Both the position numbers and the translations under genes were made by a program. The notes beneath the pieces were generated by a model. That model ran no database searches. It was given only the letters and a program-made list of their open reading frames with translations, and was not told where the DNA came from. This document shows, one piece after another, positions 1-55,614 of a DNA stretch of 64,000 nt (its first letter is position 1; each line of letters opens with the position of its first letter). The stretch is from Caecitellus pseudoparvulus (taxonomy: Eukaryota > Protista > Bigyra: Bicosoecida), in assembly GCA_965644315.1 (NCBI GenBank), contig CBFFRQ010000068.1, positions 310,001 through 374,000 on the forward strand, written 5' to 3'.

Positions 1-3000
1 GACATCAGCCCATATAGCCAGCCTGTGTTTTCTGTATCAAATGACTTCTCTGTCTTCCGAACCTACGGGAATGCTGACATCGACATCTTTTGCGCAGCAG
101 AGAACGTGGCCAGCTGTGCAGCAAAGATGGGCCCATTGCTACAGCACGCCGCCTCTGTCCCACAGGCTGGAGGGAACCCAATTTTTGGATGCAAACGACC
201 AGTCGTGAACCCCTGTTGGATCAGGAATGGGACAGCCATGGGCGTGGCGTTCGTTGAGGACGAGTGGCGCTCTGGCCGCTGCATGTCTTTCCCGTTAAAG
301 CCAAGCGTGCGTGCGCCGATCACCGTGGGCGAAGCAGTGCTCGAGTGCAGCGACATCATCGCACCACTGCAAGGAGTTCTGACAAACTTTGACACCCCCG
401 CGGTCCGTGAGCAGTACGAACAGCGGATGGCAGTCTCGCAGACCGCCAGCGCGCCTCCAGCCGCTTGGATTGGACTAAACATGACCACCCTCCCTGACCC
501 TGTAAAGGAGAAGGGCCCCTTTTGGGAAACGTCCACGTTTGGCTTCCATGAGTCCCCCACTGAGTACTGGTATGGCACGCTCAATGAGCTTGGCTTTATC
601 GCCGGGCAAAGCATTCAAGACGGCTCAGAGCGCTGTGCCCTGATGACCATCTCAAATGGAGGGTATGCGCCCAACCTTGGGTCCCCATACACAACCGGAT
701 GCACTGGTACCCACGATGCCTTGAGTTGCGCATTTCCTTCCCTCGTGCAGCAAGTTTACTGGAATGTCCCGTGGCATGGAGCGTACAGCCTGGGCAACGC
801 AACCGGGCCCCTGCGGCCTGGTCCTCCGCCAGTTTGCGCAGCCAACAGCATGCCCTCCCCAAGTGCCACTGCTTCGCCATTTCCGACTGTAAGTGGGACT
901 TCGACGGCCCATACAACGCCTTCGACCTCGTCCACTTCTTCGCCATCTTCAACTGCGCTCCCTACGGGCAGCGGGACCGCCACTCCACCCCAGACCCAGC
1001 CTCCTTCCCCTTCGCCATCGAGCACTTCCACTCCATCCAGCACTTCCACTGCTTCCAGCGCAAGGTCGCCCTCCGGAACAGCATCTCTAACGGCAACGGT
1101 AACCCCAAGCGTCACAGTCACGCCCAGTGCCAGCTCGACAGGCAGTGGAACACCATCTTCTTTCTCAACCCCATCGGTTACTGGCTCTGGAACTCCGTCA
1201 GCATCCAGCACACCCACAGGCACACCGAGTCACTCAAGCTCTGCGACAGGCACCCCATCAGCGTCTCCGTCCTCCAGCAACACAGCCAGCACTTCGCCGA
1301 CAGCAACACGCTCGTCAACGGCAAAGGGCACACCTTCTGGCACGCCATCCATGTCAGCCTCCAATTCCGCCTCTCCGACAGGGACTTCCACGGCATCCAG
1401 TACGCCTTCTCACACCGTAACCCCCACCCAATCACCCTCTACATCGCCGACTCAGACTTCCATGGCAACGACGACCAACTCGCCGTCGACCACCGTGTCC
1501 TTGTCTCCGTCTGCAACTGCTAGCGCAACGACCTCGGTCACGCCAACTGCTGCGGCGACGGGCACAGCATCGGCCACGTCCAGCAGGACAGCTGACCCCA
1601 CCTCCAGTGGCACGCCACGCAGCACGGCGTCACCGACAGCGACGGCCACACCGACACACTCGCCCACCTCCTCCCCGACCGCCTCTGGAACCGCAACGCC
1701 CAGCGCCACAAGCACACCGACAAATACCCCCTCACAAACCCCATCTCCTTCTTCGCCCATCTGCCCGCCACTCTTCGTCAGTGGTACACTTGGGAGTTGG
1801 CGCTGCTCGTCAGGTGACAGCGCACAACCAGTGCAATTCTCGCCAGGAGCTGCCACATTGCCAGCTGGAGTGGGTGCTCGCTGCCTGTTCAGTTGCCCGC
1901 CAGGTTTTGCCCCTTGGGGCCTTGTTGGGGCAAAGTGTGTCTTCTCCGGAGCAGGTGCATGGTCGTTCGCACTGCTGCCTGACAGCAGCCCACACACGCT
2001 CGCCTCTGTGTGGGAGGCCCCCTCAGTATGGGATACCGCACCCTCGGGCGCGGCCTTCCCGTCTGCCCCTCAGTGTGTCCGTGTCGCCCCCTTGGCTCCT
2101 GGCCAGCCCACTGTGCTGCAAGTATGTCAGCAGCAAGCAGCGCTGAGCTGGCAGCCGGGGCCTGCACAGCAGCCGCTCTCCTTGCCACCCACCAGCTATG
2201 CATGGTCGCGGCAGCACTTTTCGTGGTTGCTCTCGCTTCCTGTAGGCGTCTCGGGGGGTGCATCATCAGGTGTTGGCTCCGCCGCACTGGCACCCTCTGC
2301 AGCCTTCTCTGGCGCGAACGTGACAGCACTGGCGCAGGTGCTGCGGCAGCAGTGGATCGGGCTGCATGCGGCAGTGGCCACTGGCCTCAGCTTCTATGCT
2401 GTGTTTCCCCACGTGAATGGGACGCAAGCTGAGATCCCAGCAGCAGTGCAAGGCAGCGTCGCGGCGTACTCGCAAGCCACTGGACAGAGCGCCCTGTTGG
2501 CGACGGTGCTTGACCCTGCCTTGGTCCCGCGAGGCAACGTGGTGGGCATGCCGGTGGACACGCTGGTGTCCTTCACTGTCAGGGCTGGGAATGCCTGGGG
2601 CATGTCGAGTGCTTCTACAGAGTCGCGGCCAGTGCGGTTTTCGTCGTCAGAGTGCGGCGCAGTGGCCTTCTCCGCCCGGGTCGCGGGCGGAGCATCGCTC
2701 ACTACGGACGCGAACAAGGGCAACCAGCCGCCTCCGATAGTTTTCGGCGCATCAAGAACAAGAGCCCACGACCGCCGCCTCCTGCAGAGCGGCCCTGGCG
2801 TTGTGCTGGACGCCCGAGTGGGCACGCTGCCGCCTGATCTGACGTGGCCCGAGGTGCCACAGCAGCCGGGCGCGCCAACTGCAGACACGCCCATGTGGAT
2901 CGGCCCCTCGCTGACTCCTCGAGGCGTCGTCATGGCGCTGAGTCTGAGCGACCCGCCAGGCAGATTCGAGAGGGTGGACATCGCCTGCTCTGTAGCCAGG

Positions 3001-41110: not shown

Positions 41111-42247
41111 ATGGAACCCAACATTGCTTCAAAGTGCAGTGTGTTTGGTGTGGGTGAAGAAGTGGAGGCCGCTGTGCAAGCCAGCGTGGAGCCTGTCGAG
41201 GCTGCCCGGGCTGCTGAACTGGTGGCTCGACGGTACCAGATCCAAGCATCCCAAGAAGCGCAGGGCTACGACATCCTCCGGCACCTGGGGAAGGGACACG
41301 AGTCCCCTTGTGCATCTCGGTCAGCAGGTGAGCCGTCGGGTGCTGCCTCCCGAGCACCCTCGCGCTGGGGGGGGCCGGCGCACGCCATTCCGCAAGCAGT
41401 ACGCCCCCAGCCTGGGGAGGGACACAGCGGCCCTGCTGCGTTGCTGGATGTGACTCCAAGCCTGAACTACCTGCGTGGACACAGTGGTGGCCCCATCATG
41501 CGCCCGCCCACGGCGCTAAGACACGCCCACGTGGCCGAAACGCAGGAGCCGCCTGACCCCCTCCCCAGCACCACAGCAAGCCACCCTCGCCCGTGCAAAG
41601 GGGGCACTATTCCGAAGGCCGCAAGAGGGCCACAAGGGGGCGCCAAGGAGGGCCCCACCCCAGGCCCTGGCCCCGTGATCGCCGCCCCTTGCACGCGCCT
41701 CGCAGCCTCCATGGGCCAGGCTGAGCGGTGGCGCAACTCCAAGCACTGCGCCGACACGGCATCCGAGGCGGACGTCGCTGAACCGTGGAAAGTAAAGGAT
41801 GCCGTGCTGAAGCAGACGTGTAGTGTTGGCTTCGGCACGGCGCCTCGCTTTCCCGCTGAGGCGGCACCGGCGCAAGGTGCCGTGCAGGAAACGCCCCCTC
41901 CGCGTCGCGCAGCAGCATCACAAGGCGCGGGCCCCCGCCGCCACTCACGGCGACAGTCTCAACGCCGCCGTCAGCAAGATCTCCGAAGGAAGGCCCATGC
42001 GCGAGAGGCTGCTTCCCAGGCAGACACCCCGGGCCCTGGCGCATACACGTTGCCTGCGGCTGCGTTTCCAGAACGTTGCAAGTCCGCTGCAGGTGCCGTG
42101 CGTCAAGGGGTGTCGCACTCCGCCGCCCCAGCGCATGCCGAGCACTCCAAAGTTGTACTTCCACCACACGCATCCCCCCTTGAGCGCTTTGAGGCGGTGC
42201 TGGCTTCGCAAGGCTTGGCGTGGCACGGGCTGCCCAACACACCGTGA
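41111..42247 (+). CDS. SHIPPO/PG-rich-repeat (STPG/ODF3-like) candidate axonemal protein, N-terminal part
   Basis: GTIPKAAR..PGPGP, VGFGTAPRF and DTPGPGAYTLP match the PGPGxY / FGxxxR repeat pattern. It may be one gene with the next ORF. Confidence 0.5.
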   Translation: MEPNIASKCSVFGVGEEVEAAVQASVEPVEAARAAELVARRYQIQASQEAQGYDILRHLGKGHESPCASRSAGEPSGAASRAPSRWGGPAHAIPQAVRPQPGEGHSGPAALLDVTPSLNYLRGHSGGPIMRPPTALRHAHVAETQEPPDPLPSTTASHPRPCKGGTIPKAARGPQGGAKEGPTPGPGPVIAAPCTRLAASMGQAERWRNSKHCADTASEADVAEPWKVKDAVLKQTCSVGFGTAPRFPAEAAPAQGAVQETPPPRRAAASQGAGPRRHSRRQSQRRRQQDLRRKAHAREAASQADTPGPGAYTLPAAAFPERCKSAAGAVRQGVSHSAAPAHAEHSKVVLPPHASPLERFEAVLASQGLAWHGLPNTP

Positions 42248-45200
42248 CCTTGAGCGACTCAGAGCTGCCAGGCCGCGAAAATTCCGGCGCAGTGCACCCC
42301 ATGCAGCGTGTGGAAGGTGCGACACGCCACGCTGTGGCAGCTGCCTCGGCCGCCTCTCGAGCAGATGACGTCATTCGGAGTGCAGGTGCAGAACCGCCCC
42401 CCGCCAGCGCGCACCGCACTCGATTGGCGGCCCCTAAGCCGCACGCCAACGCCATGCGACACGACGACTACGGCGTCGCGGATGGGCGGAAGGTGCCTGG
42501 GGACAGTGCACGCGCACAGGGACTTGTGTTCCGCTCACGCCTCCGCGCTGCCGGCGATGCACGAGGGCCGGTGGCGTCAGGCGGCCAATCAGCGCGTGTC
42601 GCAGCAGAGGCGCGGGGCGGGGGAGCAGAGGCAGTGCCCAAGGGGCGCAGGGCAGACCTGAACTTTGCCAAGGCCGGGCCGCGTTGGGCGGATGGACGGC
42701 CCGTGCCGGCCTGGCGCCCCAGCTGGACGTACAAGAAACCGCCTCAACCGTCACCGGCCGCCTCCCCGCCACGCACGAAGGTAGTGTACGCGACGGGCGA
42801 GCGGCAGTCGGGGGCAGCGTGGGAGGAACAGGACGGGAAGGTGCAAGACGACCCTTCGCCAGATGAGGGTGGTGGGCTGGACACGTCGCGTGGCGGCTTG
42901 CGCCGTGCACTGCAGCATGCCGTGCGAGCGTTCGTGACAGGGCTAGGGTTGGGGGGGGACCCCGAGCACCGCCCGCCACCCTGGCTGAACAGTGTTCTGG
43001 ACGAAGCTGATCTGGAGCCCGCACATGTGCACATGCCAGCTGAGCCGCTGGAGCACGCGTGCGAGGTGTGCCGTGTCGGCACGAATCCCTGCGCGCACAG
43101 CTCCACCACGGAGCGGTTGCTGGACCCTCACGGCACCGAGGCCCGACTGGCGCTTAGCCAGGAGGTGGTGCTCTTGACACCTGTTGAGTACTGGGCTGGG
43201 GTGCAGGGGGATTGGGAGGCAGTGCCGGCGGCACAGGCCACTGCGTGGGGTGACCTGCGTGTTGTCGCAGCTGCAAGCGCGCCGCAGTGGGTGCACTTGC
43301 TGCAGGCCATGACCGCCGACATTCGCGCATGTGTGCGTCGCCACGCCGATGCCACGGAAGGTGTGGGCGCCTGTGATACTGCCAAGGTCGTGCCTGCATA
43401 CCCGTACATCGCGCCGAAGGAGCCACGCACGGATGTCGAATCAGCGGCGCCCGACGACTCACGGCACCCGACACAAGCACGCGACAGCCCACCCCGACCC
43501 CGCGTGCACCTGGGCTCCACTCCCTCTGATGCATTTGCACAGGCCATGGCCACTGCCAGCCGTATCGGGGACATTGGTCGCACACAGGCTGCAACAAAGG
43601 CGGCGCGAGTCAAGAAAGGCCGTGTGCGTGCAAGACAGCGCGCGACCAAGGCGAGCGTCGCGATGCGTGCAGACACACCCGACGGGGGGAGCGCATCAAC
43701 TTCATTGCAAACCCCCTACAATTTGGGCAAGCACGCTGTGGGCCGCCCCGCCGCTGCCTTTGGCTCCTCTGCGCCGCGCCTGCAGGGGCGTGTGCCGGGT
43801 GGAGTGACGGCCCAAACGGGGCCTTGGGAAGAGGTGGTGGTGGTGCGGCGTCGCTCGCGGCCCTTCCCCAAGCCCCAAAGAGCTGAACCTGTGCTGGGGT
43901 CTGAGGATGAGGACAGTGACGCTTCGGGGGGGTGCAAATCCGACGAGGAGGAGGGAGGGGTGGGACACCCCCCCCACTCCCCTTCCAGCAGCCCCCCCAG
44001 GTCCACGACCGGGAATGGGGAAGTGGAACCCGCCCACGCTGGTCCCCTCCCCTCCCATGCTGGTCCCTGGTCGGAACGGCGAGTGGGGGGGTACACCGTG
44101 CAGGAGCGCCTGCTGGCTCAGCACGATCACCCGGACGGCGGGGTGGTGCAAGTACTGCTGAGCCGGCGGCCTGCGCGGAGGGGCGGTGGGCCCATGTCTG
44201 CGGGGGGAGCCTCCCCCACCCGACCGCGACAGGGCAAGGGGGTGGTGCGGTGGGGCGTGTCTCGGGGGGGTCAGACCCCCCCCTCCCCGCCCTCCACGGC
44301 CTGGGCAGACGTCGTGGATGTCGCCACCACCGGAGTGCGCCAGCCCCCCTCTGCCACCCCCTCCACGGCCACTGCCCAGCGCCTGGTGTGGGTGGACGAG
44401 GCGTCCTTCCTGGACGCCGCCGAGGCTGTGGGGGCGGCACTCCTGCGGGGCCGGCGACCCCCCTCCACGCCAGCGTGGGAGGCCATACAGACGGCACAGG
44501 CGTGGCAGGAGGCCCAGCGACGGCAAGCCCCCCTGCACCCCGCTGCGGCGGTGCATGGCAAGGACACCCCTGCCTTGCAGCGCGGCGGGCGGGGGGGCGT
44601 GGTCATGGCGCCGCCCTCCAAGGAGGCCGCTGCTGCAGCGGCCCGTCGCCAAGCGGCACAGGCGGCGGCAGAGGGGCAGCGCCAGGCCAACCCCGCCACG
44701 CTACACGCTGGGGCGGGGGGCCTGCCGCACCGCGGCATCTCAGGTGACGTGTCCCCCGCCACGAAGCATGCCTTTGGGCGGACGCTGCCGCCAGGGGCGC
44801 CCGGACCCGGCCCCCTGCCCCCCCCCACCGCTGCAGAGGAGAGTGGGGACGCCTCCCCCCCTCACGGCCCCGACATGGTGCTGCTGGACATGGCTGTGCA
44901 TGAGCAGTTCGGGGGGGGCAGGCGTGCCCCGGCGTGGAGGTTCGGAGGCCCACTGGGGCCCACGCCGCCCCCTCGCTTGGTGGATGCGGACCAGGGGGGG
45001 GAGGCGGTGCTGCCTCTCGGGGCCCTGCAGGAGGCACTAGCTCTGGCCCAAGCCCTGGTGCAGGCGCCGGGCCCCGCGGCGCCCCTGCCGTCCCCAGCGC
45101 TCGACCGACCGGACCGGATGCGGCCCCGAGCTGCGGAATTTGGATCCGGACCCGGCCGAGGGCTCGTGGACGACGGCGTGTCTCAGACCCTCGCAGACGC

Positions 45201-45714
45201 CGTGGTGCATGGCGAAGCGGCTGTGGATGCCCGCCTAGTGCTGGAACACTTCACGGGCGTGCCTGTGGCGGGTGCGGCAGGGTTGGGCACTGCGGACGCC
45301 TTCGGGCCTGCCGCGCAGGACGCTTCCTTGCGCTCCTTTGCGCAAGACCTGCTGCGGGGGGGTGTAGATGCAACCAGTCGTGGACAGGGGCCAGTGGACA
45401 GCAGTGCAGGGTATGCAGTGCGGCGCCGCCCCCAGTGTGGCGTGGACATGGCCCGCGCCACGGGCCGCAGTGGGCATGCGGGGCCACCGTGCACACTCCC
45501 GGAACACACCGCTGCCGTGGCACCTGGCGCGGCGGAGGGGGTGGATGCAGGCGTGTGCATACAGCGTGAGGAGCACGGCGTGGTGGGCCAGGCGCCAGGG
45601 GCCCCCTCAGGACACCCTGCGCGGTCGGTGCGGGGAGGGTACATGGCCCGCGCAGCAACAGGACGTGGCCACCGCCCCGGCTCCCCGCCACTGTGGGCCT
45701 TCGCTGGAGAGTAG
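42220..45714 (+). CDS. Long low-complexity protein, probably the continuation of the PG-rich gene
   Basis: 1164-codon ORF with similar short motifs (AFGSSAPR, WRFGGP, EFGSGPGR, DMARATGR, YMARAATGR). No clean splice junction to the upstream ORF was found. Confidence 0.45.
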   Translation: MARAAQHTVTLSDSELPGRENSGAVHPMQRVEGATRHAVAAASAASRADDVIRSAGAEPPPASAHRTRLAAPKPHANAMRHDDYGVADGRKVPGDSARAQGLVFRSRLRAAGDARGPVASGGQSARVAAEARGGGAEAVPKGRRADLNFAKAGPRWADGRPVPAWRPSWTYKKPPQPSPAASPPRTKVVYATGERQSGAAWEEQDGKVQDDPSPDEGGGLDTSRGGLRRALQHAVRAFVTGLGLGGDPEHRPPPWLNSVLDEADLEPAHVHMPAEPLEHACEVCRVGTNPCAHSSTTERLLDPHGTEARLALSQEVVLLTPVEYWAGVQGDWEAVPAAQATAWGDLRVVAAASAPQWVHLLQAMTADIRACVRRHADATEGVGACDTAKVVPAYPYIAPKEPRTDVESAAPDDSRHPTQARDSPPRPRVHLGSTPSDAFAQAMATASRIGDIGRTQAATKAARVKKGRVRARQRATKASVAMRADTPDGGSASTSLQTPYNLGKHAVGRPAAAFGSSAPRLQGRVPGGVTAQTGPWEEVVVVRRRSRPFPKPQRAEPVLGSEDEDSDASGGCKSDEEEGGVGHPPHSPSSSPPRSTTGNGEVEPAHAGPLPSHAGPWSERRVGGYTVQERLLAQHDHPDGGVVQVLLSRRPARRGGGPMSAGGASPTRPRQGKGVVRWGVSRGGQTPPSPPSTAWADVVDVATTGVRQPPSATPSTATAQRLVWVDEASFLDAAEAVGAALLRGRRPPSTPAWEAIQTAQAWQEAQRRQAPLHPAAAVHGKDTPALQRGGRGGVVMAPPSKEAAAAAARRQAAQAAAEGQRQANPATLHAGAGGLPHRGISGDVSPATKHAFGRTLPPGAPGPGPLPPPTAAEESGDASPPHGPDMVLLDMAVHEQFGGGRRAPAWRFGGPLGPTPPPRLVDADQGGEAVLPLGALQEALALAQALVQAPGPAAPLPSPALDRPDRMRPRAAEFGSGPGRGLVDDGVSQTLADAVVHGEAAVDARLVLEHFTGVPVAGAAGLGTADAFGPAAQDASLRSFAQDLLRGGVDATSRGQGPVDSSAGYAVRRRPQCGVDMARATGRSGHAGPPCTLPEHTAAVAPGAAEGVDAGVCIQREEHGVVGQAPGAPSGHPARSVRGGYMARAATGRGHRPGSPPLWAFAGE

Positions 45715-45820
45715 CGCCGCAACGCCTGCATCCAGTGTCTTCTGGCTCCTTCGTTCCCCCATCCGTGGTGTTGATGGTGGTGGGCCCCACCTCCACGGCG
45801 CCGGCGCTGGAGCTGGCGTG

Positions 45821-46272
45821 ATGGCATTCTGGCCCCGCTACGAGCGGGAAATCGACGGCGCCGCCATGCTCTGGGGCATGCAGGCCGCCATGAACACCTG
45901 CCAGGCTCGGCTTCACACCATGGATCGGATCATAGAGGTTCGCACGTGGCTCCTGAGGAGGGTCTGACTTGCGAGCAAGCCATCCCATTGACAGCACGCC
46001 TCGTCTTGCAGGAGTTCAACTATGGTGTCGTCATCCCCCTCGCTTTGCGTCAGAGTCAGACCTTGCTGGTGCGTCTCGTTCACGTTGATCAGCATGTTAT
46101 CGAGTATGTTTGCGTGACAGGCAAGGAGCCCAGCCAGCGCATGTCTGGTTGCGTGGGACATCACCCTGAGAAGGCCATTTTTCCAGGTGTCAGCCCCAAC
46201 CCCTTCATCGCGAGCATTGATGACTGCTTTGCGCAGAGGGCACTGAGCAGCAATGACAACGTCCTTGCTTGA
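45821..46272 (+). CDS. Short spliced ORF or 3' exons of the upstream gene; function unknown
   Basis: GC3-rich MAFWPRYEREIDGAAMLWGMQAAMNTCQARLHTMDRIIE, then GTTCGC...TTGCAG (45938-46011), then EFNYGVVIPLAL... in phase. It overlaps the next gene in antisense. Confidence 0.35.
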
Positions 46273-46882
46273 GGATGACAGCGTCTTTCGAGAGGAGCTT
46301 GCCTTCTGCTCATTCTCTACGAGTTCAAGTCTCTCCAACATCACCAGCAACATCTCCAAACGAGTGGACTCGCTCAGTTCACTTCCTGTGCAAGGGAACG
46401 AAGATATACGCGCGCCAGCTCAGCTTATCAGCTCAGCCTTGGGAGTGGGTGGCAGTTGTGGTTGCCTCAGCCGGCAAATGCAGCGCCTACCCTCTTCTGG
46501 AGCAGGAAACCCCAACTTCTTGCACAGAATTTTCGTGATGCGCCTGTTGTGTGCGGTAGATGCTGTGGAGTGGGGTGGGGGCAAGCATGGTTGCAAGACC
46601 AAGGATGCGGCTTTTGAATGGGATTGAGCAAGACATACATGATGGCTCCATGGCTGAGCAGTTGCTTCTCAAGGCTTTTGCGTGAACAGGAAATGCACTG
46701 GCACTTGTCTCAAGAGTTATTGCGCGCAGTGTGGTGATAGTGTCACGTTCTGTCTGTGGTGCGCCGTGTTGGTTTTGAAGGGTCAACGATTTCCGCAACT
46801 CGGGCTTGCCTTCGATTGACTGGGCGTCTGGCGGACAAAACCTATTGAATTTCGAGCTGCTTGCTGCTACAACTATTCTCAT
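45913..46882 (-). CDS. Three-exon orphan gene divergent from the transposase (candidate element accessory protein)
   Basis: Exons 46882-46639, 46562-46491 and 46385-45913. Introns 46563-46638 (GTATGT..CCACAG) and 46386-46490 (GTAGGC..TTGCACAG) are both phase 1 and join three separate ORF-track frames into one ORF (..AMEPSSSTAHNRRITKILCKKLGFPAPEEGSELSESTRLEMLL..). The 3' end is uncertain. Confidence 0.6.
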
Positions 46883-46983
46883 AAAACCTCTGCAGCTTTT
46901 CCGTCCGTCGTTCCTCTACTCAGTGCTACTTTATCTCGTATTGCGGGTTCGACAACGCACTTCGCGGCCCTTCCGAACTGACT
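46883..46983. promoter_or_regulatory. Probable bidirectional promoter between the orphan gene and the transposase
   Basis: 101-nt pyrimidine/AT-richer spacer between the divergent ATGs at 46882 and 46984. Confidence 0.4.
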
Positions 46984-49900
46984 ATGGCTCATTCACACCT
47001 TCACGCCGAGAAGCCCCACAAGTGCGCGACTTGTAAGCGTGTTTTCAAGCGAGTATCAGACCGCAATCAGCATCTCAAGCGTAGCAGGGCGTGTCGGGCA
47101 GAGGCGGCTCGTCAACTGAGGGCATGGCTCCAACCATGCCCACTGGCTCAAGAAGGACGGGATGATGGGGGTACCAGGGCGGGGGCTGACGACACTGAGA
47201 GCCTGTCTTTCACTGATACAATTATCGACCCGACACAGTTCTTTCCTGATCTGGTGTCGCAGACAGGGGCGGGGGCCGCGTCAAGTCGGAGCCTTCCTTG
47301 CAGAGAAGGAAGTGGCTCCGACACCTCGTGGGAAGAGTTGGAAGGGGAGGAGGTAAGTGAAAGCGACGAAGGTGAGCCGGCCTTGTTCACAGGCAGGTAC
47401 CTACATACGGAGGGGGAGGCGCAAGATGCTTCAGTTGGTCGACAGCATGCCCAGGGCGTGTCAGTGTTTGACGGAGTTGGACCCCCACCCCTCTCGACAA
47501 CGCGCCCGACGGTCCCATCCAACCTGAACATGAACGCGGTAAGATGCATCCGGGAGGTTGCTGAGGCCAGGGCGTGCTTCCCTCGGGAGGATGCGGAAAA
47601 GTTTGAATTTCTTGTGAGGGTGTATCGCACCGGGCTGTCGGCTGCGAGTGCGTTTGCCATCGCTCGTGACCAGTGGGCAAAAGATGTTCACAGATTTGGC
47701 AGGGAAGGAGAGCCTGGATGCAGAACGTCTAGGCCTATCAAACCACTAGACCTCTTGGCCGATTTCCGACACAGGGCAGCATCAGATCCAGGAGTGCTGC
47801 CCTTGTGCGCTCACAAGGTTCCAATGCCCATGGGCCTTCTCACAGGCGACAGAAGTCTGGGGCATCTCACCCTGTATGGCACAAGTATCGTCGACGCAGC
47901 GATTAATATGCTAGCCCGACTGGACCCCCTGCGGCTCCTGCCCAATATTGGGTCTGGAGAATGGGCGGATCCCGTCCTAACCCCAGGGGTCGACGTTGAA
48001 ATGGGGGCAACACTCGCAGGTGAGGTCTCCGCCGCTTGGACACAGTCTGATGCCATAAGCCAAGCTGCCTTTGACACTCAGTGCAGGCAGCGATCCAGTG
48101 CTGGTCGTTGCGAGCCTCCACCCCCACCTCTATCGACGCCCATGCTCCGAAAGCCGGCGGTGCAGGGTGGGAGACTGCAAGGCCTTGTCATGGCTGGCGT
48201 GCAGGCTTCTTCCCCCTCCACACTCTCCGAGTTCCAAGGGGGGGAATGCGCGCGGCAGAGCTTGGCACTTACCCTCCCACACGGTGCCCTCCCCTTAGTC
48301 CTCAGTCTTTTCCTCGACGGAGCCAGCGCCGGACGGCATGGGGCACACGAGCTGACACCGCTCAGCGTTCGATGCCTTCAGTTGCCGACCAAAGAGGCGA
48401 GAGGGGTCGCATCAGCCAGTCTGCTTGCCATGCTCCCGTCATTCCAAGCCATGACTGTGGCGTCGAAGGCTGTCGAGAGAGGGGGGGCATCAGCAGCTCT
48501 CGTTAGACATCGGGCATTTCAGAACACCTTGGAAGCCATTGTCTTCAAGCCCTTGGCAAACATCTGGGCTTCCGGGGGTTTGGCCGTCCCTGTTCCTCAC
48601 GAAGCCATACAGAGTCTCCAATCGATTGGGGTTAAGGTGACTGTGGTCCGCCACGCAGGAAAGAGCGTGCCGTATGCCCGAGTCTTGCCCGTCATCGGAC
48701 TCCTAAGCTTGGACATGAAGGAAGCCTGGAGGGTCTTCAACCTGCTATCATTGTCTCAGGTGGCCTGTAGATGTAAACCGAAGCAGGCAGGGACACCAAC
48801 GGACTTGGGAGTGTCTGCATCTGTCCATTTGCGCACGCGGTGCCGGCTACGTGGAGGCCAAGAGCACCTCCTTGCACTACGAGGATCACAAGGGCAAGAG
48901 CCCGGACAGGACGTCGACCAGGTTCTGGGTGGGCGGAAGTTCCCAAGTGACGTGTGTGCGGCCGAGCGATACGCGTGGATGTTCGCTGGGGAAAACCCGT
49001 ACGTCGCGCGCCCTCCTGACCGCTTGCACGTCTTTGCGGCAACTATTGCGGGCGATCAAGTCTGGAAGCACTTGCAGGCAGCGATGAGGGCTCGCCCAGC
49101 ACGGTCTGCTCGGCCATTAAAAGAACGACAAGACGTTTTGCACCAACGTCTTCGAAGCACGTGGTCCCAGGAGGTCGACGGGACGAAGCTTACAGGGGCT
49201 CTCCAGTCCACTCTCCATAGACTACTCTCTGGCGCAATGTTGAGCATAGAGCAGAGACTTGGAATACTGCCCCACCTGGCCTGGATCATTGGGAACGACA
49301 ACTCCGTTATTCCTAGCGTTGAAGTGCGACAGCTCTTTCAGTTGCTTCTTGGCACAATCGAGGTCGTGTGTCACTTCCTGTATGTGCGGCCTGTGTCTGC
49401 ACCAGGTGACCCATGTCGCATCTCTCAGTGGCTTGCGAGACTGAACACTGTGTACAGTTTGCTGGCAGCACACGTCGCTCGCCGATCCCTGAAGCGAATG
49501 AGGCCCGGGTTCAGCAGTCAAGGGGCGCATGCTGGCCTTCAGATGTCAACGAATGCTGCCCCACCAGACCCCCAGAGCGTGGACTACCCCAAGGCACACG
49601 AGAGTCTACACTTTGGAAGTGCATTGTGGTGGTTTGGGTCCCTAGAAGCTACAGATGCTGATGTCGGCGAATCATTCCACACCGTGGTCAAGGGGGCATG
49701 GCGAAGCCTCAACACTGGTAAGTCCAATCTACTCCAGCGGGTCGCCGAGCGAGTACTCTTCATCACCTGGCACAGCAGTTTTGACCTCCAGCCGACGTCA
49801 TTCGAACGACGCGCTTCTGAATGGCACACAAGGTGCCTCTCTTGGCGCGCAGCGTGTGTCCTAAACCCAGATGGAGTTGCGTACTCAACCCTGGCAACCC

Positions 49901-50550
49901 CCGTGAGATCTCGACGATTGACGTCGAGCGAAGGAAACCTCTTTTCCCGCGTACCTGGCGGTGCCATCCAACCATTCAGTGCTTGGGCTGGCAAACATGT
50001 CTTCTTTTCCCAGTCTTTAGGCTTGTCTGTGAGGCTTCCAGCTGGGACACTTGTTGGGCCCGAGCCCCTCCCACAAGGCAAAATACTGCAGATCTTCACC
50101 AAAGTGAGGTTGCGTTTCCCATCAGGAAACACCAACATGATCTCCCTTCCAGCCTACCTCGACACCGTCGTGGAAACTCCTTTCGAGGGACAGGACCGGC
50201 GAGCTTTGAGCCCAATATTGGCGGTCCTGTGCTTCGCCCCTGCACCGCCTACAGTGGCCACAGCCTCCGGAACACCAACACCGGATCTTGACAACGGTGA
50301 AGTGTACATACTGTATACGGACCTGAGACCGACAGTCACAGATGTTTCGGGGTGGGCACGAGTAGCGAAACCGGATGAAGGCAGCCGCGTGGCACTCATG
50401 AACTGCACAAGCATTCGTGGGGAGTCGGTGGTTGCATTGCGGCCGTCCTTACTTCAAGAAGAGGATGCCACATATTTGCACCACTGGCTTCAAGCCGGAC
50501 TGGCCGGCAAGCAACGCCAAACATCCCAGTCCAGGCGATGGAGACGATAA
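46984..50550 (+). CDS. C2H2 zinc finger + Plavaka-type DDE transposase, intact
   Basis: N-terminal KPHKCATCKRVFKRVSDRNQHLK zinc finger. Core motifs in Plavaka order: LSLFLDGAS..GAHELTPL..CLQLP..R..LLAMLP; LSLDMKEA; PPDRLH; YPKAHESLHF..LWWFGS..TDADVGESFH..VKGAWRSLN. The C-terminal beta-rich segment VALMNCTSIRG resembles Plavaka/CACTA tails. Confidence 0.8.
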   Translation: MAHSHLHAEKPHKCATCKRVFKRVSDRNQHLKRSRACRAEAARQLRAWLQPCPLAQEGRDDGGTRAGADDTESLSFTDTIIDPTQFFPDLVSQTGAGAASSRSLPCREGSGSDTSWEELEGEEVSESDEGEPALFTGRYLHTEGEAQDASVGRQHAQGVSVFDGVGPPPLSTTRPTVPSNLNMNAVRCIREVAEARACFPREDAEKFEFLVRVYRTGLSAASAFAIARDQWAKDVHRFGREGEPGCRTSRPIKPLDLLADFRHRAASDPGVLPLCAHKVPMPMGLLTGDRSLGHLTLYGTSIVDAAINMLARLDPLRLLPNIGSGEWADPVLTPGVDVEMGATLAGEVSAAWTQSDAISQAAFDTQCRQRSSAGRCEPPPPPLSTPMLRKPAVQGGRLQGLVMAGVQASSPSTLSEFQGGECARQSLALTLPHGALPLVLSLFLDGASAGRHGAHELTPLSVRCLQLPTKEARGVASASLLAMLPSFQAMTVASKAVERGGASAALVRHRAFQNTLEAIVFKPLANIWASGGLAVPVPHEAIQSLQSIGVKVTVVRHAGKSVPYARVLPVIGLLSLDMKEAWRVFNLLSLSQVACRCKPKQAGTPTDLGVSASVHLRTRCRLRGGQEHLLALRGSQGQEPGQDVDQVLGGRKFPSDVCAAERYAWMFAGENPYVARPPDRLHVFAATIAGDQVWKHLQAAMRARPARSARPLKERQDVLHQRLRSTWSQEVDGTKLTGALQSTLHRLLSGAMLSIEQRLGILPHLAWIIGNDNSVIPSVEVRQLFQLLLGTIEVVCHFLYVRPVSAPGDPCRISQWLARLNTVYSLLAAHVARRSLKRMRPGFSSQGAHAGLQMSTNAAPPDPQSVDYPKAHESLHFGSALWWFGSLEATDADVGESFHTVVKGAWRSLNTGKSNLLQRVAERVLFITWHSSFDLQPTSFERRASEWHTRCLSWRAACVLNPDGVAYSTLATPVRSRRLTSSEGNLFSRVPGGAIQPFSAWAGKHVFFSQSLGLSVRLPAGTLVGPEPLPQGKILQIFTKVRLRFPSGNTNMISLPAYLDTVVETPFEGQDRRALSPILAVLCFAPAPPTVATASGTPTPDLDNGEVYILYTDLRPTVTDVSGWARVAKPDEGSRVALMNCTSIRGESVVALRPSLLQEEDATYLHHWLQAGLAGKQRQTSQSRRWRR

Positions 50551-50700
50551 GCCGGGGCACTTCAAGTCTCAAGGCGGCGGACCAGTGTCCAACCCACGAA
50601 CAACACCTTACAGGTGGGGATAGAACTTGTCGCAATGGTATACAGAGTTGTAAGACGCAGTTGAAACAGCGCCATGGCTCACTTCCTGACGGGGTCACCC

Positions 50701-50745
50701 CACTCGAGACCACCTCGAGACACTCAGAGCAGACCAGACTCGAGC
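50701..50745. repeat. Short imperfect ~10-nt repeats containing three CTCGAG palindromes
   Basis: CACTCGAGAC CACCTCGAGA CACTCAGAGC AGACCAGACT CGAG, about 150 nt after the transposase stop. Confidence 0.6.
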
Positions 50746-51432
50746 CTCTGCAGGGGCACCATGAAGCGGGAGAGGCGAACACGGCTCATACTGCCAGAAA
50801 GCGCGTGAAACCATCCAGGAGGTTATGAGAGTCCATGTGGAGCTTGCTAGCATGCCCTCCGTAGCGCGCAGCTCAAACCCTGTACATGGGCTGGCGCAAC
50901 AGAGCGTGAGGGTCGACATACACCCCCCAGAAACATGACGGCTCCCCCTCCAGAAAGCAGTTTCGCCACCTCACCCTCTCGCACCCAGACATCGGTGCAG
51001 CTGCGCTGGAACGCTAATGCGAAGCCAAATCTCATGCACTCTGCAGGTTACCCGCCCTGCTGAAGATAAGCAGGGAATACATCTGATTACGCAGCCCCCT
51101 AGTGTGCACCTCGCGTGGAGTGTGGTTGGCGGAAGTGCTGCCTGCACTCCTCCGACGGGAGGGAAACCCACACACGCGCTGTCCCTCACACAGCAGCTGC
51201 GGTGAGATCTCCGCGCATACCAGCGCAGCAAGTGAGTCAAGCTGCACTCCAGTATCTCTGCTGCCATCCATGCTCGTTGACAGCGCCCACCCTGCCAAGG
51301 ATCGCTGCTTCTGCAGCCTTGCACTCCGCCCCCCCACACACACCTTCGACACGCCGCCCCCTCCCGCCAGCTTGCGGCATACGCGAGGCCCTTAGAGCAC
51401 TCCACGCCAGGACTTGATTCCCGTTTTTCGCA

Positions 51433-54400
51433 ATGCCCACTGCTCTGGCACTCTTGCATCGTGATTGGGCCCCGCGCGCCCCCCGAGTGCGGCTTCCATG
51501 CTCCGCGTTGGCTGTGGCTCTGATGGCCGTCACAGGGTTTGCGTGTGTGGCAGGTGAGGCCCCAGGGAGCCCCGCCCAGCACCGTGCCCACAGCAGGCAG
51601 CACGCCCAAGGGGGTGAATATCGTGGGCTGCCAAGTCTGGGCTTGACAGCGACGCCTGCGGCACGGCAGCACTTGCGCCACGGGCGCCGTCTCGCCTCAG
51701 CACAGGCCACGCAAGTGTCAGCTGGCGGCGGCCACACATGCACAATGCTGCAGGGCGGGAACATCATGTGTTGGGGGAGCTCTGTGTATGGGCAGCTTGG
51801 CTATGGCAACACTGAGAAGATCGGGGACGACGAACACCCATGGGCTGCAGGCACCGTGCCGCTGGGGAACGGGCGGGCAGTCGCCAACATCTCCACTGGC
51901 GGCCAGCACACGTGTGCACTGCTGACTGATGGCAGCATCATGTGCTGGGGCCGGGGTGCCGATGGCCGCCTCGGCTACGGCAACACAGCCAACATTGGCG
52001 ATGACGAGCTGGCATCCAGCGCAGGCACAGTGCAACTGGGGGCCGGGCGCACAGCCATCCAGGTATCAGCTGGTGAGCGGCACACGTGTGCTGTACTCAC
52101 GATGGGGGAAGTGATGTGCTGGGGCAGCAACCAGCGCGGTCAGCTGGGCTATGCCAATACCAACAACATCGGAGACAAGGAGCACCCCGAAGCAGCTGGG
52201 CCCGTGCAGTTGGGAGACGGGCGGCGAGCGATGCAAGTGGCAGCTGGCTCGACGCACACATGTGTGCTGCTGACAGACGGAAACATCATGTGCTGGGGGC
52301 AGGGAGATGGTGGCCGCCTGGGGTACGCCAACACGAACACGGTGGGCGATGACGAGCACCCAGCTGTGGCTGGCACGGTGCAGCTGGGTGCTGGGCGGCT
52401 CGGGGTGCAAGTCGTCGCCGGCAGCACGCACTCGTGTGTGCTGCTGATGGATGGAAGCGTCATGTGCTGGGGCCGGGGCGCTGAGGGCCAGCTTGGCTAC
52501 ACGAACACGAGCAATGTGGGGGTCCTTCGCCACCCCGCAGAGGTCGGCACCGTGCAACTCGGGCAGGGGCGCCGAGCTGCCTACATCTCCGCCAGCGGCT
52601 ACCACACATGCGTCGTGCTGACTGTCGGTGATGTCATGTGCTGGGGGGTCGGCCACGATGGCCAGCTGGGCTACGGCAACACCGCCAACGTTGGCGACGA
52701 CGAGCTGCCGTCCAGCGCAGGCACAGTGCAAGTGGGGGCCGGGCGCACAGCTGCCCTGGTCACCGCGAACGTGTATCATACGTGTGCGCTGCTGGTGGGG
52801 GAAGGCATCATGTGCTGGGGGCATGGCGGCTTCGGCAGCCTGGGCTATGCCCGCGTGCGCGGGCACGTCGGCGACGACGAACACCCGTTCACCACGGGAT
52901 TGGTGCAGCTCAACCAGCCCACCGCGCACCCAACCTGCACCTCGACCGCCACCAACACACAGTGCCCTTGGCTGTCGCCTCAAGCCTTCAGGTCTGTGTG
53001 GTCTGGCTCATGCTGGGCGTGGCGGCCACTGGGAAACACCAGCCTCTCCTTGTCCCCCCTGCAGCCCGCCTTTCCTGGCTCCGTCACGTGTCGTCATGGC
53101 TGCGACCATGCCGGCACGGCCCAGATCATGCCTTGTCCGCGCCAAGGCGCATGTCCAGTGTCGAGTTCCTTGGCGGGCATCACAGGCTGCGCGCCGGGCC
53201 ACACTGGGCCCGCATGTGGCATGTGTGCACCTGGCTGGGCAGCCACATCGCCCTGCACACCCTGCACGAAGTGCCCTGACACTGGTGTGTCGCCAGCAGG
53301 CGCGGCCATTGGCTTTGCCTTGGTGCAAGTTATCGTAGCCCTGGCGCTGGCGGTGTTCGCGCTGTTTCAGTACGCCAAGGCTCCTGAACAGCTGACAACC
53401 AGCCTGTTCACAGGCGGGCTGAGAACAATGCTCTGGTTCATTGGCATTTCTGCGCAGGTCGCCATCCTCGCTCCTTCAGGTCCAGACTCCCTCCAAGCGT
53501 CAGCACACTCCCTGCACCAGTGGGCAGGCGCATGCGAGCTGGCCAGGCCGTGGGCAGGCCAGTCCACGTCAAATTTGAACGGCACGCTGTACACTCGTGA
53601 TGCTGGCGCTGAATCAGCTGGCACAGGTGTTATGGCTGTGCTGTCTAGCATCACTGGATCCAGCAACTTTGCCAGCCTGCCATCTGTGGCCTGTGCTGCA
53701 GGTGGTGGCGACCCATCCAGTCCAGACAACGCTGGGAACCTGTTCCTGGTGGCGCTGGGCGCCTTCCTGCTCCTGGCATCCGCACTGACGCTGGGTCATA
53801 CTAAACCTGCAGCTGGCGCAACGCGTGGTGTGTGGTGCAGTGTGTTGCTGTTGCTTCCGGCAGCTGCATACGTCCGCCTGCTCCCAGCTCTGCTGCAGCT
53901 GCACGCCGAGTTGGTGGGGCTGCGGCCCCAGTATGAGGGTGTTTGCGATGCCAGCTCACCAGCTGGTATCGCTACCGCTGCACTGCCGTTCCTTATCCCG
54001 CTTGTGCTGCACATCTTGGCAGGCAGCGTGGGCTTCGTCGCCTTCATGGCTTGGCGTCAGTGGCGAGGAGCGGCCACCGCTGCATTGCGAGGCGCCACGG
54101 TGCGTGGCTTCCTGTCCAACGGCTACCGCATTCAGATGACACCAGAACAAGCTCGGAACCTTGTGACTCACGCAGGTGGCGACAAGAGCAGTGCCATCGC
54201 GGAGGCCGCTGTCGCTGAGGCTGAGCTAGCCCAGGCGGCATGCTGGGGCTTTGCGTGGCTGCTGCCCACACACACGTTTCTCGCGATGCAGACCACTCTC
54301 GTCGCTGTTGTGGCGTGCGTCACGTGGCTGACCACTGACATCATGCTCCGTCTGTGCATGGTGGGTGGCGTGGTGCTGGGTAGCCTGCTCCTCGTGCGGT

Positions 54401-55614
54401 GGCGGCGGCCTTGGTGTCTGGAGGAGCTGACTGACCTTGATGTCATGGCCCATGGCGGCATCCTGCTGCAGGTGATCCTGGTGGGCGTGCACAGCCTCCG
54501 CCCACCTGAAGGCGTGCGTGGAGTCACGGATGCTCTCCTGTATATTTCACAGGGCGTCATCCTGCTGGCCATTCTGCTGGTCGTGGTGCGTGGGTACAGC
54601 TCAGCGGCACGGGCAGTGCTGGCTCGGGTCGGAGCCCGCATCCGGGCCCTGCTGCCTGAGCTGGGCAGTGCCGACAGCGCAGGGGACAGCACTGTGGGGC
54701 AGATCGTGGACAGTCGAGTGCCGACTCTCGTGGACATTGCGTCAGCCTTGGCGCAGCGACTGACAAGGGGTTGTCGCATCCAGCCAGCCGCCCCACGCGC
54801 CGCCACCAGCTTGAGCACTGTGTTGTCGTTTCCTGGTGGCATGGTGCAGCAAGGGGTGACTGGTAGCCCGCGTAGCGATGCCGATGCCGTGCTGCAGGCA
54901 CTGGGTCCCAGGGGAGCCGCCCTCGTGTCGGTGGCATCCACGCAAAGCTCTGCGCGAACGAAGGCCGCAGCAACAGAAACGACAGAGGAGGAGTCCAGTG
55001 CACGCCCAGCCCAACCGTTATCTTTGCTGGCATTACAGGAAGCATCTCTGCTCCCCATCACCGAGGCAGGTGCCGGCAACGCGACGAACCCTCTGCGGGC
55101 AGGCAAGGCAGAGCCCGCCCCTGCACGCAGCGATGAAGCAGCTGGTGCTGAGAAGCAAGCTTCGACGCCATCACAGTCAGAACAGGCAAAGCAGACGCCT
55201 GATCTTCCAGCCAGTCGAGCGCGAGCACCAGGCCAACTCGCAGACCTGCCAACTTCTGTAGTGCGGCGCAGCTCTCAAGCTGGGCTTGCAGACTTCAGTC
55301 AGTCAATGATGGGTGTTTCAGGCGCACCTTCAGCCCCCAGTGCTGCCAGTCCGCGTTCTAGCTTCAGCGAGGGGCCAGAGCTGGGTGTGGAAGGCGACGA
55401 AGCAGAGAACCCTCTGCAGCGCACACGCCGTTTGAGCATGGGCCACATGGCGGCCATTGCAGACATGGCGGAGCAGCAGCGCACCCGGCGGGGCTCAATG
55501 GCGGCCAGGCGGTCGTTTGATGACCGAGGCCGCATGTCCTTCACCAACACAGCTCGCAGGCGCTCGTCAAGCACCCGGCGCAGAAGCAGCGCCGCCAAGC
55601 CGCCTCCATCGTAG
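51433..55614 (+). CDS. Receptor-like protein: RCC1/BLIP-II seven-bladed propeller ectodomain, Cys-rich linker, multi-pass TM domain, phospho-motif-rich tail
   Basis: Hydrophobic signal segment; seven repeats of the form xxAGxxHTCxLxxxGxxMCWGxGxxGxLGY; CAPGHTGPACGMCAPGW..CTKCP; multiple TM helices at 53300-54590. Confidence 0.85.
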   Translation: MPTALALLHRDWAPRAPRVRLPCSALAVALMAVTGFACVAGEAPGSPAQHRAHSRQHAQGGEYRGLPSLGLTATPAARQHLRHGRRLASAQATQVSAGGGHTCTMLQGGNIMCWGSSVYGQLGYGNTEKIGDDEHPWAAGTVPLGNGRAVANISTGGQHTCALLTDGSIMCWGRGADGRLGYGNTANIGDDELASSAGTVQLGAGRTAIQVSAGERHTCAVLTMGEVMCWGSNQRGQLGYANTNNIGDKEHPEAAGPVQLGDGRRAMQVAAGSTHTCVLLTDGNIMCWGQGDGGRLGYANTNTVGDDEHPAVAGTVQLGAGRLGVQVVAGSTHSCVLLMDGSVMCWGRGAEGQLGYTNTSNVGVLRHPAEVGTVQLGQGRRAAYISASGYHTCVVLTVGDVMCWGVGHDGQLGYGNTANVGDDELPSSAGTVQVGAGRTAALVTANVYHTCALLVGEGIMCWGHGGFGSLGYARVRGHVGDDEHPFTTGLVQLNQPTAHPTCTSTATNTQCPWLSPQAFRSVWSGSCWAWRPLGNTSLSLSPLQPAFPGSVTCRHGCDHAGTAQIMPCPRQGACPVSSSLAGITGCAPGHTGPACGMCAPGWAATSPCTPCTKCPDTGVSPAGAAIGFALVQVIVALALAVFALFQYAKAPEQLTTSLFTGGLRTMLWFIGISAQVAILAPSGPDSLQASAHSLHQWAGACELARPWAGQSTSNLNGTLYTRDAGAESAGTGVMAVLSSITGSSNFASLPSVACAAGGGDPSSPDNAGNLFLVALGAFLLLASALTLGHTKPAAGATRGVWCSVLLLLPAAAYVRLLPALLQLHAELVGLRPQYEGVCDASSPAGIATAALPFLIPLVLHILAGSVGFVAFMAWRQWRGAATAALRGATVRGFLSNGYRIQMTPEQARNLVTHAGGDKSSAIAEAAVAEAELAQAACWGFAWLLPTHTFLAMQTTLVAVVACVTWLTTDIMLRLCMVGGVVLGSLLLVRWRRPWCLEELTDLDVMAHGGILLQVILVGVHSLRPPEGVRGVTDALLYISQGVILLAILLVVVRGYSSAARAVLARVGARIRALLPELGSADSAGDSTVGQIVDSRVPTLVDIASALAQRLTRGCRIQPAAPRAATSLSTVLSFPGGMVQQGVTGSPRSDADAVLQALGPRGAALVSVASTQSSARTKAAATETTEEESSARPAQPLSLLALQEASLLPITEAGAGNATNPLRAGKAEPAPARSDEAAGAEKQASTPSQSEQAKQTPDLPASRARAPGQLADLPTSVVRRSSQAGLADFSQSMMGVSGAPSAPSAASPRSSFSEGPELGVEGDEAENPLQRTRRLSMGHMAAIADMAEQQRTRRGSMAARRSFDDRGRMSFTNTARRRSSSTRRRSSAAKPPPS
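51712..52911 (+). repeat. Seven tandem 174-nt (58-aa) RCC1-like repeats
   Basis: The Cys codon of CWG falls at 51769, 51943, 52117, 52291, 52465, 52639 and 52813, an exact 174-nt period. Confidence 0.95.

Follow-up and report, generated by a model that had tools for sequence, protein, structure and literature searches.

A probable one-ended remnant of a divergent Plavaka-like transposon, with an open transposase gene, in Caecitellus pseudoparvulus

The stretch of DNA analyzed here (64,000 nucleotides of contig CBFFRQ010000068.1 from the bicosoecid protist Caecitellus pseudoparvulus, positions 310,001 to 374,000, referred to below as the window) contains an uninterrupted open reading frame (ORF) at 46984–50550 of the plus strand, which begins with ATG and runs for 1188 codons with no internal stop. 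The original prediction, made from the letters of the sequence, took this ORF for a Plavaka-type transposase and its surroundings for an intact, recently active, and possibly horizontally acquired element in a non-fungal host. The locus raises the questions of what kind of transposase is encoded, whether the DNA around it is still an element that can move, and why the gene is open. Our reading, to which we assign a probability of about 0.85, is that 45921–50941 is a decayed, one-ended copy of a cut-and-paste transposon of ∼6.8 kb with two genes, belonging to a divergent Plavaka-like lineage of the CMCT clade, a group that comprises EnSpm, Mirage, Chapaev, Transib/RAG1, Plavaka, ESTA, and Lanisha (Kojima 2025, PMC12730594).

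The probability of 1188 stop-free codons at 58% GC is ∼5e-19, and the ORF is equal in length to its copy on contig C147 of the same genome (1188 amino acids, 95% amino acid identity), the ratio of nonsynonymous to synonymous substitution rates (dN/dS) being 0.19. Conservation was judged on an alignment of seven paralogues, which are 23–30% identical to the window protein except for one 95% copy. The five motifs that had been predicted, in the order D, DxxE, PDxLH, PKxHxxxH, and GExxH, are all present in the window protein as FLD445(GAS), D577-M-K-E580, P677-P-D679-R-L-H682, Y-P-K870-A-H872-ESL-H876, and D-V-G-E896-SF-H899, and each is kept across the alignment at positions that are invariant or nearly so. 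D445 (48316–48318), D577 (48712–48714), and E896 (49669–49671) are conserved and in order; H872-x3-H876 (49597–49611) is also present, but H876 is not invariant. The cysteine pair, C595-x-C597 (48766–48774), has one residue between its members, not two, and C620 is a further invariant cysteine. The three acidic residues, the cysteine pair, and the histidine pair all lie within a RAG1/Transib-like catalytic core (residues 202–936, window 47587–49791, plus strand) that is delimited by the profile and structural comparisons described below. The predicted C2H2 finger is found at residues 12–36 (47017–47091, plus strand), but as a C2HC-type variant, C-x2-C-x12-H-x5-C, in which C14, C17, and H30 are invariant in the seven paralogues and for which the predicted model is beta-beta-alpha; a search with the family profile hits a C2H2 consensus finger (E 4e-4), and Pfam zf-C2H2 matches the window protein at an E of only 0.43. 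Between the finger and the core, an acidic linker (residues 44–165, window 47113–47478) is predicted to be disordered, with a predicted local distance difference test score (pLDDT) of 24–45, and is weakly conserved among the paralogues.

The relationship of this protein to Plavaka is seen when profiles are compared. Alignment of the seven-paralogue profile by hhalign with four proteins positive for the Pfam Plavaka family (PF18759) gave a probability of 99.2% and an E of 2e-19 over 462 columns, with both aspartates and the PxDxLH, PKxHxxxH, and DxxxGExxH motifs in register, indicating that the catalytic core is homologous with that of accepted Plavaka transposases. A search of 1.84 billion representative proteins with the same profile gave 17 matches only, 10 of which were scanned against Pfam; four of these, the long proteins P0009, P0011, P0012, and P0013, pass the Plavaka gathering score of 26.3 bits at 46–103 bits, and the intermediate protein P0005, which is closer to the family, lies just under that cutoff at 22.7 bits. 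The Plavaka-positive proteins are the only annotated distant matches of the profile in that collection.

The RNase H fold expected by the original prediction was found in the form of a RAG1-like core. The AlphaFold model of the window protein, built from a 17-row alignment (pLDDT 70.9, predicted template modeling score 0.73), was used in a Foldseek search of the PDB that returned 33 chains at E ≤ 1e-3, all of them RAG1, the enzyme that rearranges antibody genes, followed by the amphioxus RAG1-like protein (BbRAGL) and the Helicoverpa Transib transposase (HzTransib). With VIA-align, residues 202–936 of the model superimpose on RAG1 481–1023 with a Z of 15.2 (469 residues aligned), and the corresponding values for BbRAGL (ProtoRAG) and HzTransib are 11.2 and 11.3, the aligned lengths across the three structures being 413–469 residues. 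The predicted model has the RAG1/Transib-type core of the CMCT enzymes, with an RNase-H domain and an inserted zinc module. From the alignments and the modeled fold, we conclude that the window protein is a putative DDE (Asp-Asp-Glu) transposase of the CMCT clade whose nearest named relatives appear to be Plavaka, outside the present Pfam definition of that family. Because of the hhalign alignment with Plavaka-positive proteins and the structural match with the RAG1 core, the designation “Plavaka-type DDE transposase” holds, as that of a divergent sister lineage. A quick tree, which took in only this family and the Plavaka-positive proteins, places the family in a clade apart from the PF18759-positive proteins, with long branches.

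The form of the complete element can be reconstructed from other copies. The genome (30.6 Mb in 215 contigs) contains 44 matches to the transposase, about 20 of which have open frames of at least 1000 amino acids with 27–35% identity, and the two close copies lie on contigs C147 (95%) and C161 (94%). Both of these extend 377 bp to the right of the region of similarity with the window and stop at ...GAAACATGACGG, after which their flanks differ; at the other side both contigs open with GTTTCTTG..., an inverted copy of the right end from which the first 7 nucleotides are missing. The shared assembled left sequence might have meant that they are alleles of one insertion, a candidate explanation that was rejected because the right flanks diverge directly after the terminus. 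Since C147, which carries a near-complete copy, starts 7 nucleotides inside the left inverted repeat, the complete element would be ∼6.84 kb, with the ends 5′-CCGTCATGTTTC...GAAACATGACGG-3′ (CCGTCA...TGACGG). The identical right terminus adjoins three unrelated flanks in the genome, in which the subfamily has three right ends only, and one in the metagenome contig L024. The heptamer GACATAC/GTATGTC is clustered at both ends of C147, with four occurrences in the 62 bp nearest the left end and three in the 70 bp nearest the right end, against a background of 0.08 per kb across the window. The complete element carries an orphan second gene on one strand and the 1188-residue transposase on the other; the second gene, ORF2 (C147:573–1895, minus strand), encodes 440 amino acids, belongs to no Pfam family, and shares 31% identity (E 1e-55) with its counterpart in the L024 element. 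The two ORF2 products (440–453 residues, the L024 gene being at 730–2091, minus strand) are best conserved near the C terminus, in LLPxxAGAWxxLRVEQWxxPRxAWVV. L024 also starts inside the left subterminal repeats, as C147 (L021:1) and C161 (L022:3) start 7 nucleotides inside the left terminal repeat; assemblers seem to break at these ends, the left tips and target-site duplications (TSDs) of the subfamily being systematically missing.

When the window copy is compared with this form, it is found to be a remnant that is truncated on the left and retains its right terminus (45921–50941, plus strand). Its DNA similarity to C161 and to C147:1457–6452 (95% identity) spans 45921–50915, and 50916–50941 is the same terminal 26 nucleotides as in C147 and C161, so that the window copy has undergone an internal deletion of ∼350 bp (breakpoint 50915–50916, relative to C147:6453–6802) and ends at 50941. 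This deletion removed two of the three right-end heptamers, leaving a single GACATAC at the end of the copy. The right terminal inverted repeat (TIR), located by a pattern search at 50927–50941 on the minus strand, reads CCGTCATGTTTCTGG inward, and the element ends in ...GAAACATGACGG at 50941. On the other side, C147 and C161 continue for 1456 bp to the left of the point at which the window copy stops, and the window copy is without this left 1.46 kb, which includes the left end and the C-terminal two thirds of ORF2. What remains of ORF2 is a frame of 148 codons (45913–46359, minus strand) that stops 6 nucleotides past the truncation point. The spacer between the two divergently oriented genes (46360–46983), within a segment (45921–46983) that is 95.7% identical to C147, may be a shared promoter region. 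A search for inverted repeats across 45500–51600 found no terminal repeats for the window copy, and the pattern search found only the right terminus within the window; the left end is missing, not hidden, and the window copy does not have the two TIRs and TSD of an autonomous element. Without one end and most of the subterminal repeats, the copy would not be expected to be cut out as a unit, and it is probably immobile.

The left truncation is shared with another labelled organism. Logan contigs from read run X5, which is labelled as a different organism, bridge both junctions of the window copy, one covering 45400–46917 with 27 differences and a second covering 50887–51399, and the divergence of the flanks between the window and X5 is ∼1.8%. 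Since the X5 contigs bridge the same truncated junction, both the insertion and the loss of its left part are older than the divergence of these lineages. In a third organism (X12), the right junction also appears to be bridged, by a low-depth contig in which the subterminal region is undeleted, and no joint corresponding to an empty site of the window copy was seen in the read-run contigs. It should be noted that the read comparison is one of Logan contigs only and that inside the ORF these collapse the three copies. The 11 differences listed for X5 within the protein all map to residues 5–321, linker included, and 7 of the 11 are at codon positions 1 or 2. No relative of the window locus was found among metagenome contigs, and a search with its junction pattern gave no match, near-identical genomes being possibly absent from both collections; an exact-sequence cluster look-up found neither the window nor the C147 protein in the collection searched. 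The three copies (window, C147, and C161) are separated by a synonymous divergence (dS) of 0.08–0.11, with a dN/dS of 0.16–0.22; the window copy has a dS of ∼0.11 to its two nearest copies, and our own three-way star split of the pairwise distances gives a dN/dS of ∼0.23 on the window branch. Low dN/dS does not show selection in place, because it is expected if the divergence mostly arose during transposition. The “intact” element of the original prediction is reduced by these results to an intact ORF, the surrounding element being without a left end and incomplete in its right subterminal region. Recent activity of the window copy is not supported, given the loss of the left terminal repeat and most of ORF2, its dS, and the occurrence of the truncated junction in another labelled organism. 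The comparison of copies that had been proposed as a means of defining the element provided the right end and the inverted left end, but neither the left tip nor a TSD.

Several observations weigh against our reading and should be recognized. The direct Pfam search that had been suggested gave the window protein no Plavaka or Transposase_21 match with the cutoff relaxed to E 10, so that the protein falls short of the Plavaka gathering score; two of the seven paralogues reach PF18759 at E 0.005, far below the gathering threshold, and Transposase_21 was found in none of the seven paralogues or the 10 scanned profile matches. A PDB sequence search with the family profile found zinc fingers only and no RAG1. 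D445, D577, and E896 are assigned their catalytic role from alignment and fold, and the left terminus and TSD of the window subfamily are assembled nowhere, both contigs beginning inside the left end. Finally, the ORF is intact despite the lost ends, which could mean something beyond simple decay.

This last point bears on an alternative, in which the window copy has become a domesticated or stationary gene: selection would maintain its ORF because it serves the host or because it supplies transposase in trans to the copies with both ends. The gene has stayed open although the copy has been stripped of its left end, of two thirds of ORF2, and of 350 bp of subterminal sequence on the right, the truncated junction recurs in X5, and probably the right junction in X12, with no empty site seen, and the dN/dS values of 0.19–0.22 relative to the other copies, as well as that of the window branch, are low. 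However, values of this size are equally expected if the divergence accumulated during continued transposition, the C147 and C161 branches are similarly constrained, and, with a flank divergence from X5 of only ∼1.8%, an ORF of 3.6 kb could stay open by chance (by our own estimate, roughly 0.2). We therefore regard domestication as improbable and favor the interpretation of the locus as a decayed, one-ended copy.

The island of lower GC is as predicted: the GC content of 45921–50941 is 57.2%, versus 67.3% for the rest of the window, and the GC content at third codon positions (GC3) of the ORF is 0.59, versus 0.69–0.84 in the neighboring long ORFs. Such a composition could reflect a recent horizontal acquisition from a donor of lower GC, as opposed to membership in a family long resident in the genome, and the fact that the GC3 of the ORF is below the 0.64–0.80 of other subfamilies, which is like that of the host, together with the similarly low value of 0.57 in the sister element of L024, accords with that proposal. 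On the other side, the three copies are already apart at synonymous sites, the window copy is common to differently labelled organisms, and the nearest relatives outside the genome, P0002 and P0018 (∼50% amino acid identity), come from contigs of a near-identical organism whose flank is 96–97% identical to this genome; for the same reason the candidate explanation that L024 comes from a different donor organism of lower GC was rejected. No donor lineage for the element was found among the 1.84 billion proteins, and in the quick tree the family members of this genome fall into at least four deep lineages, which fit long residence as well as repeated entry. Recent acquisition thus appears highly improbable, and the horizontal origin suggested by the original prediction is not borne out, low GC3 being present also in the sister element of a near-identical relative; horizontal transfer as such is neither shown nor excluded. 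A decayed, one-ended copy is the interpretation that we retain.

The family itself is mobile and multi-copy. A complete element of another subfamily, 8251 bp in length (C161:5599–13849, comprising L022:5599–9900 and L023:1–3949), has inserted into the transposase ORF of the C161 copy at the point corresponding to window 50061; it encodes a paralogue with 32% identity to the window protein. Its ends, CAGTCAAGAGATTTTC and CCGTCGTGAGATTTTC, and a 2-bp duplication, CC, are identified from the window and C147 copies, in which the ORF is uninterrupted; the ends are imperfect inverted repeats with 13 of 16 positions matching, followed by C/G runs. The metagenome contig L024 carries a sister element that matches the window subfamily in its two-gene layout and in its terminus, ...GAAACATGACGG; its transposase (P0002) and the window protein share ∼50% identity. 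The sequence beside the element matches contig C31 of the present genome at 97% identity in DNA (96% at the protein level); the site is empty in C31, and the similarity starts at the first base after the terminus, which fixes the right boundary to the base. The L024 subfamily was absent from this genome in a genome-wide transposase search. The presence/absence site (L024:1–6960 versus C31:469500–473500) lies beside a giant ORF, a 4402-residue open frame in this genome. Since the nested paralogue has a TSD and the L024 site is empty in this genome, relatives of the window element moved recently in this species complex.

The C-terminal part of the protein (residues 969–1168, window 49888–50487, plus strand) is a beta-rich domain that, in comparisons of predicted models, resembles BAH domains. 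In a search with the whole-protein model, this region matched the BAH domain of ORC1 (Z 8.3) and BAH1 of DNMT1 (Z 8.0). When residues 969–1168 were folded alone (pLDDT 75.9) and compared with 48,161 PDB representatives with no Foldseek prefilter, the top 12, from different proteins, were all BAH domains (best Z 7.9). Foldseek with the isolated domain also had an ORC1 BAH domain as its best match, which was weak (E 0.09), and the window protein has no sequence match to Pfam BAH (PF01426). Matches in the ESM Atlas, at TM scores of 0.41–0.49, were to fungal DUF6830/Plavaka transposase clusters, one Transposase_21 cluster, and one BAH cluster. That the tail has a BAH-like fold, common to the tail of fungal Plavaka proteins, is moderately supported by these models, the scores being middling. 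A limited literature search found no paper joining a BAH domain to Plavaka-like transposases. By analogy with RAG1 and the PHD domain of RAG2, one may speculate that through this tail the transposases read chromatin and direct cutting or insertion to marked nucleosomes, as a single-chain counterpart of that pair, and, separately, that the intact but end-less window copy represents an early stage of domestication; both are rather unlikely proposals in our judgment.

The structural comparisons suggest how a complete element might be mobilized. The transposase would bind the ends through its N-terminal zinc finger and RAG1-like DNA-binding region, and an RNase-H-type active site composed of D445, D577, and E896 would cut and rejoin the DNA, with the Cys/His zinc module (C595-x-C597 and H872-x3-H876) presumably bracing the active site as in RAG1 and Transib. 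Insertion would involve a 2-bp staggered cut, the duplication being seen directly for the paralogue nested in the C161 copy, and the BAH-like domain may tether the enzyme to chromatin. The unbroken transposase gene of the window copy could at most act in trans, on copies with both ends.

Two further long ORFs flank the remnant, both on the plus strand. The first (42220–45714) would encode 1164 amino acids at 71% GC, belongs to no Pfam family, and ends 206 bp before the truncation point; in the part of it covered by the DNA search (44500–45920) this putative gene has no second copy in the genome. The second (51433–55614) encodes a 1393-residue protein with an RCC1-like propeller (Pfam WD40_RLD, E 8e-60; RCC1_2, E 2e-49) and belongs to a repeated family, with DNA matches of 64–68% on many contigs.

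Plavaka was first described from basidiomycetes, but it has also been published from red algae, in which a third of the Bostrychia genome consists of giant elements with accessory genes, from the green algae Auxenochlorella and Spirogyra, and from Amoebidium, an animal relative. The novelty of a non-fungal host is therefore less than originally stated. The present family resembles Plavaka in its homologous catalytic core, with the order D, D, Cys pair, His pair, E, in the 2-bp TSD of the nested paralogue, in having a second gene (accessory genes are common in Plavaka), and in a C-terminal beta domain that is similar to the fungal Plavaka/DUF6830 tail. It differs in that the window protein has no Pfam Plavaka match and belongs to a separate clade in the quick tree, in having a C-x-C rather than a C-x2-C pair, and in an orphan accessory gene; this gene, ORF2, is not a TET/JBP gene and, compared with PAG2 by domains only, has none of the Pfam domains reported for that protein. 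The host, too, is different, being a GC-rich marine protist. The published termini are TGT..ACA with a 2-bp TSD in PlavakaA and CATCA..TGATG with a 2–3-bp TSD in PlavakaB (Kojima 2025, PMC12730594). The CCGTCA...TGACGG termini of the present family are neither of these, but their CGTCA core is like the CATCA of PlavakaB, the resemblance being limited to a CRTCA core.

With RAG1, ProtoRAG, and Transib (6dbx, 6b40, and 6pqx), the family shares its core architecture over ∼470 residues. In the window protein, 18 residues separate the second aspartate from the Cys pair and 20 separate the His pair from the glutamate, which is close to the spacing in RAG1, where we take the corresponding positions to be D708–C727 and H942–E962. 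The sequence identity with these proteins is only 10–14%, however, and the present family has no RAG2-like partner, a TSD of 2 bp versus 5 bp, different termini, and, in addition, the N-terminal finger, the disordered acidic linker, and the C-terminal BAH-like domain. EnSpm/CACTA elements are part of the same CMCT clade, also have short TSDs and often a second gene, and are connected to the window protein by the Transposase_21 cluster of the Atlas that resembles its C-terminal domain; the family differs from them in having no Transposase_21 match, termini that are not CACTA, and a TSD of 2 bp rather than 3 bp.

The window copy itself appears to reflect ordinary decay and is a useful case of an immobilized copy with an open transposase gene. 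What is new here is the anatomy of the subfamily, the truncated and shared state of the window copy, the empty site of the sister subfamily, and the structural test of the BAH-like tail. The lineage would add a deeply divergent branch to the Plavaka/CMCT group, the group that contains the ancestors of RAG1; this branch is nearly missing from public databases, as the 17 matches to its profile indicate, and its host is far from the fungi and algae in which Plavaka is known. With its predicted RAG1-like fold, C-x-C zinc module, 2-bp duplication, CCGTCA ends with heptamers, and possible BAH-like tail, the family may offer a tractable model for end recognition.

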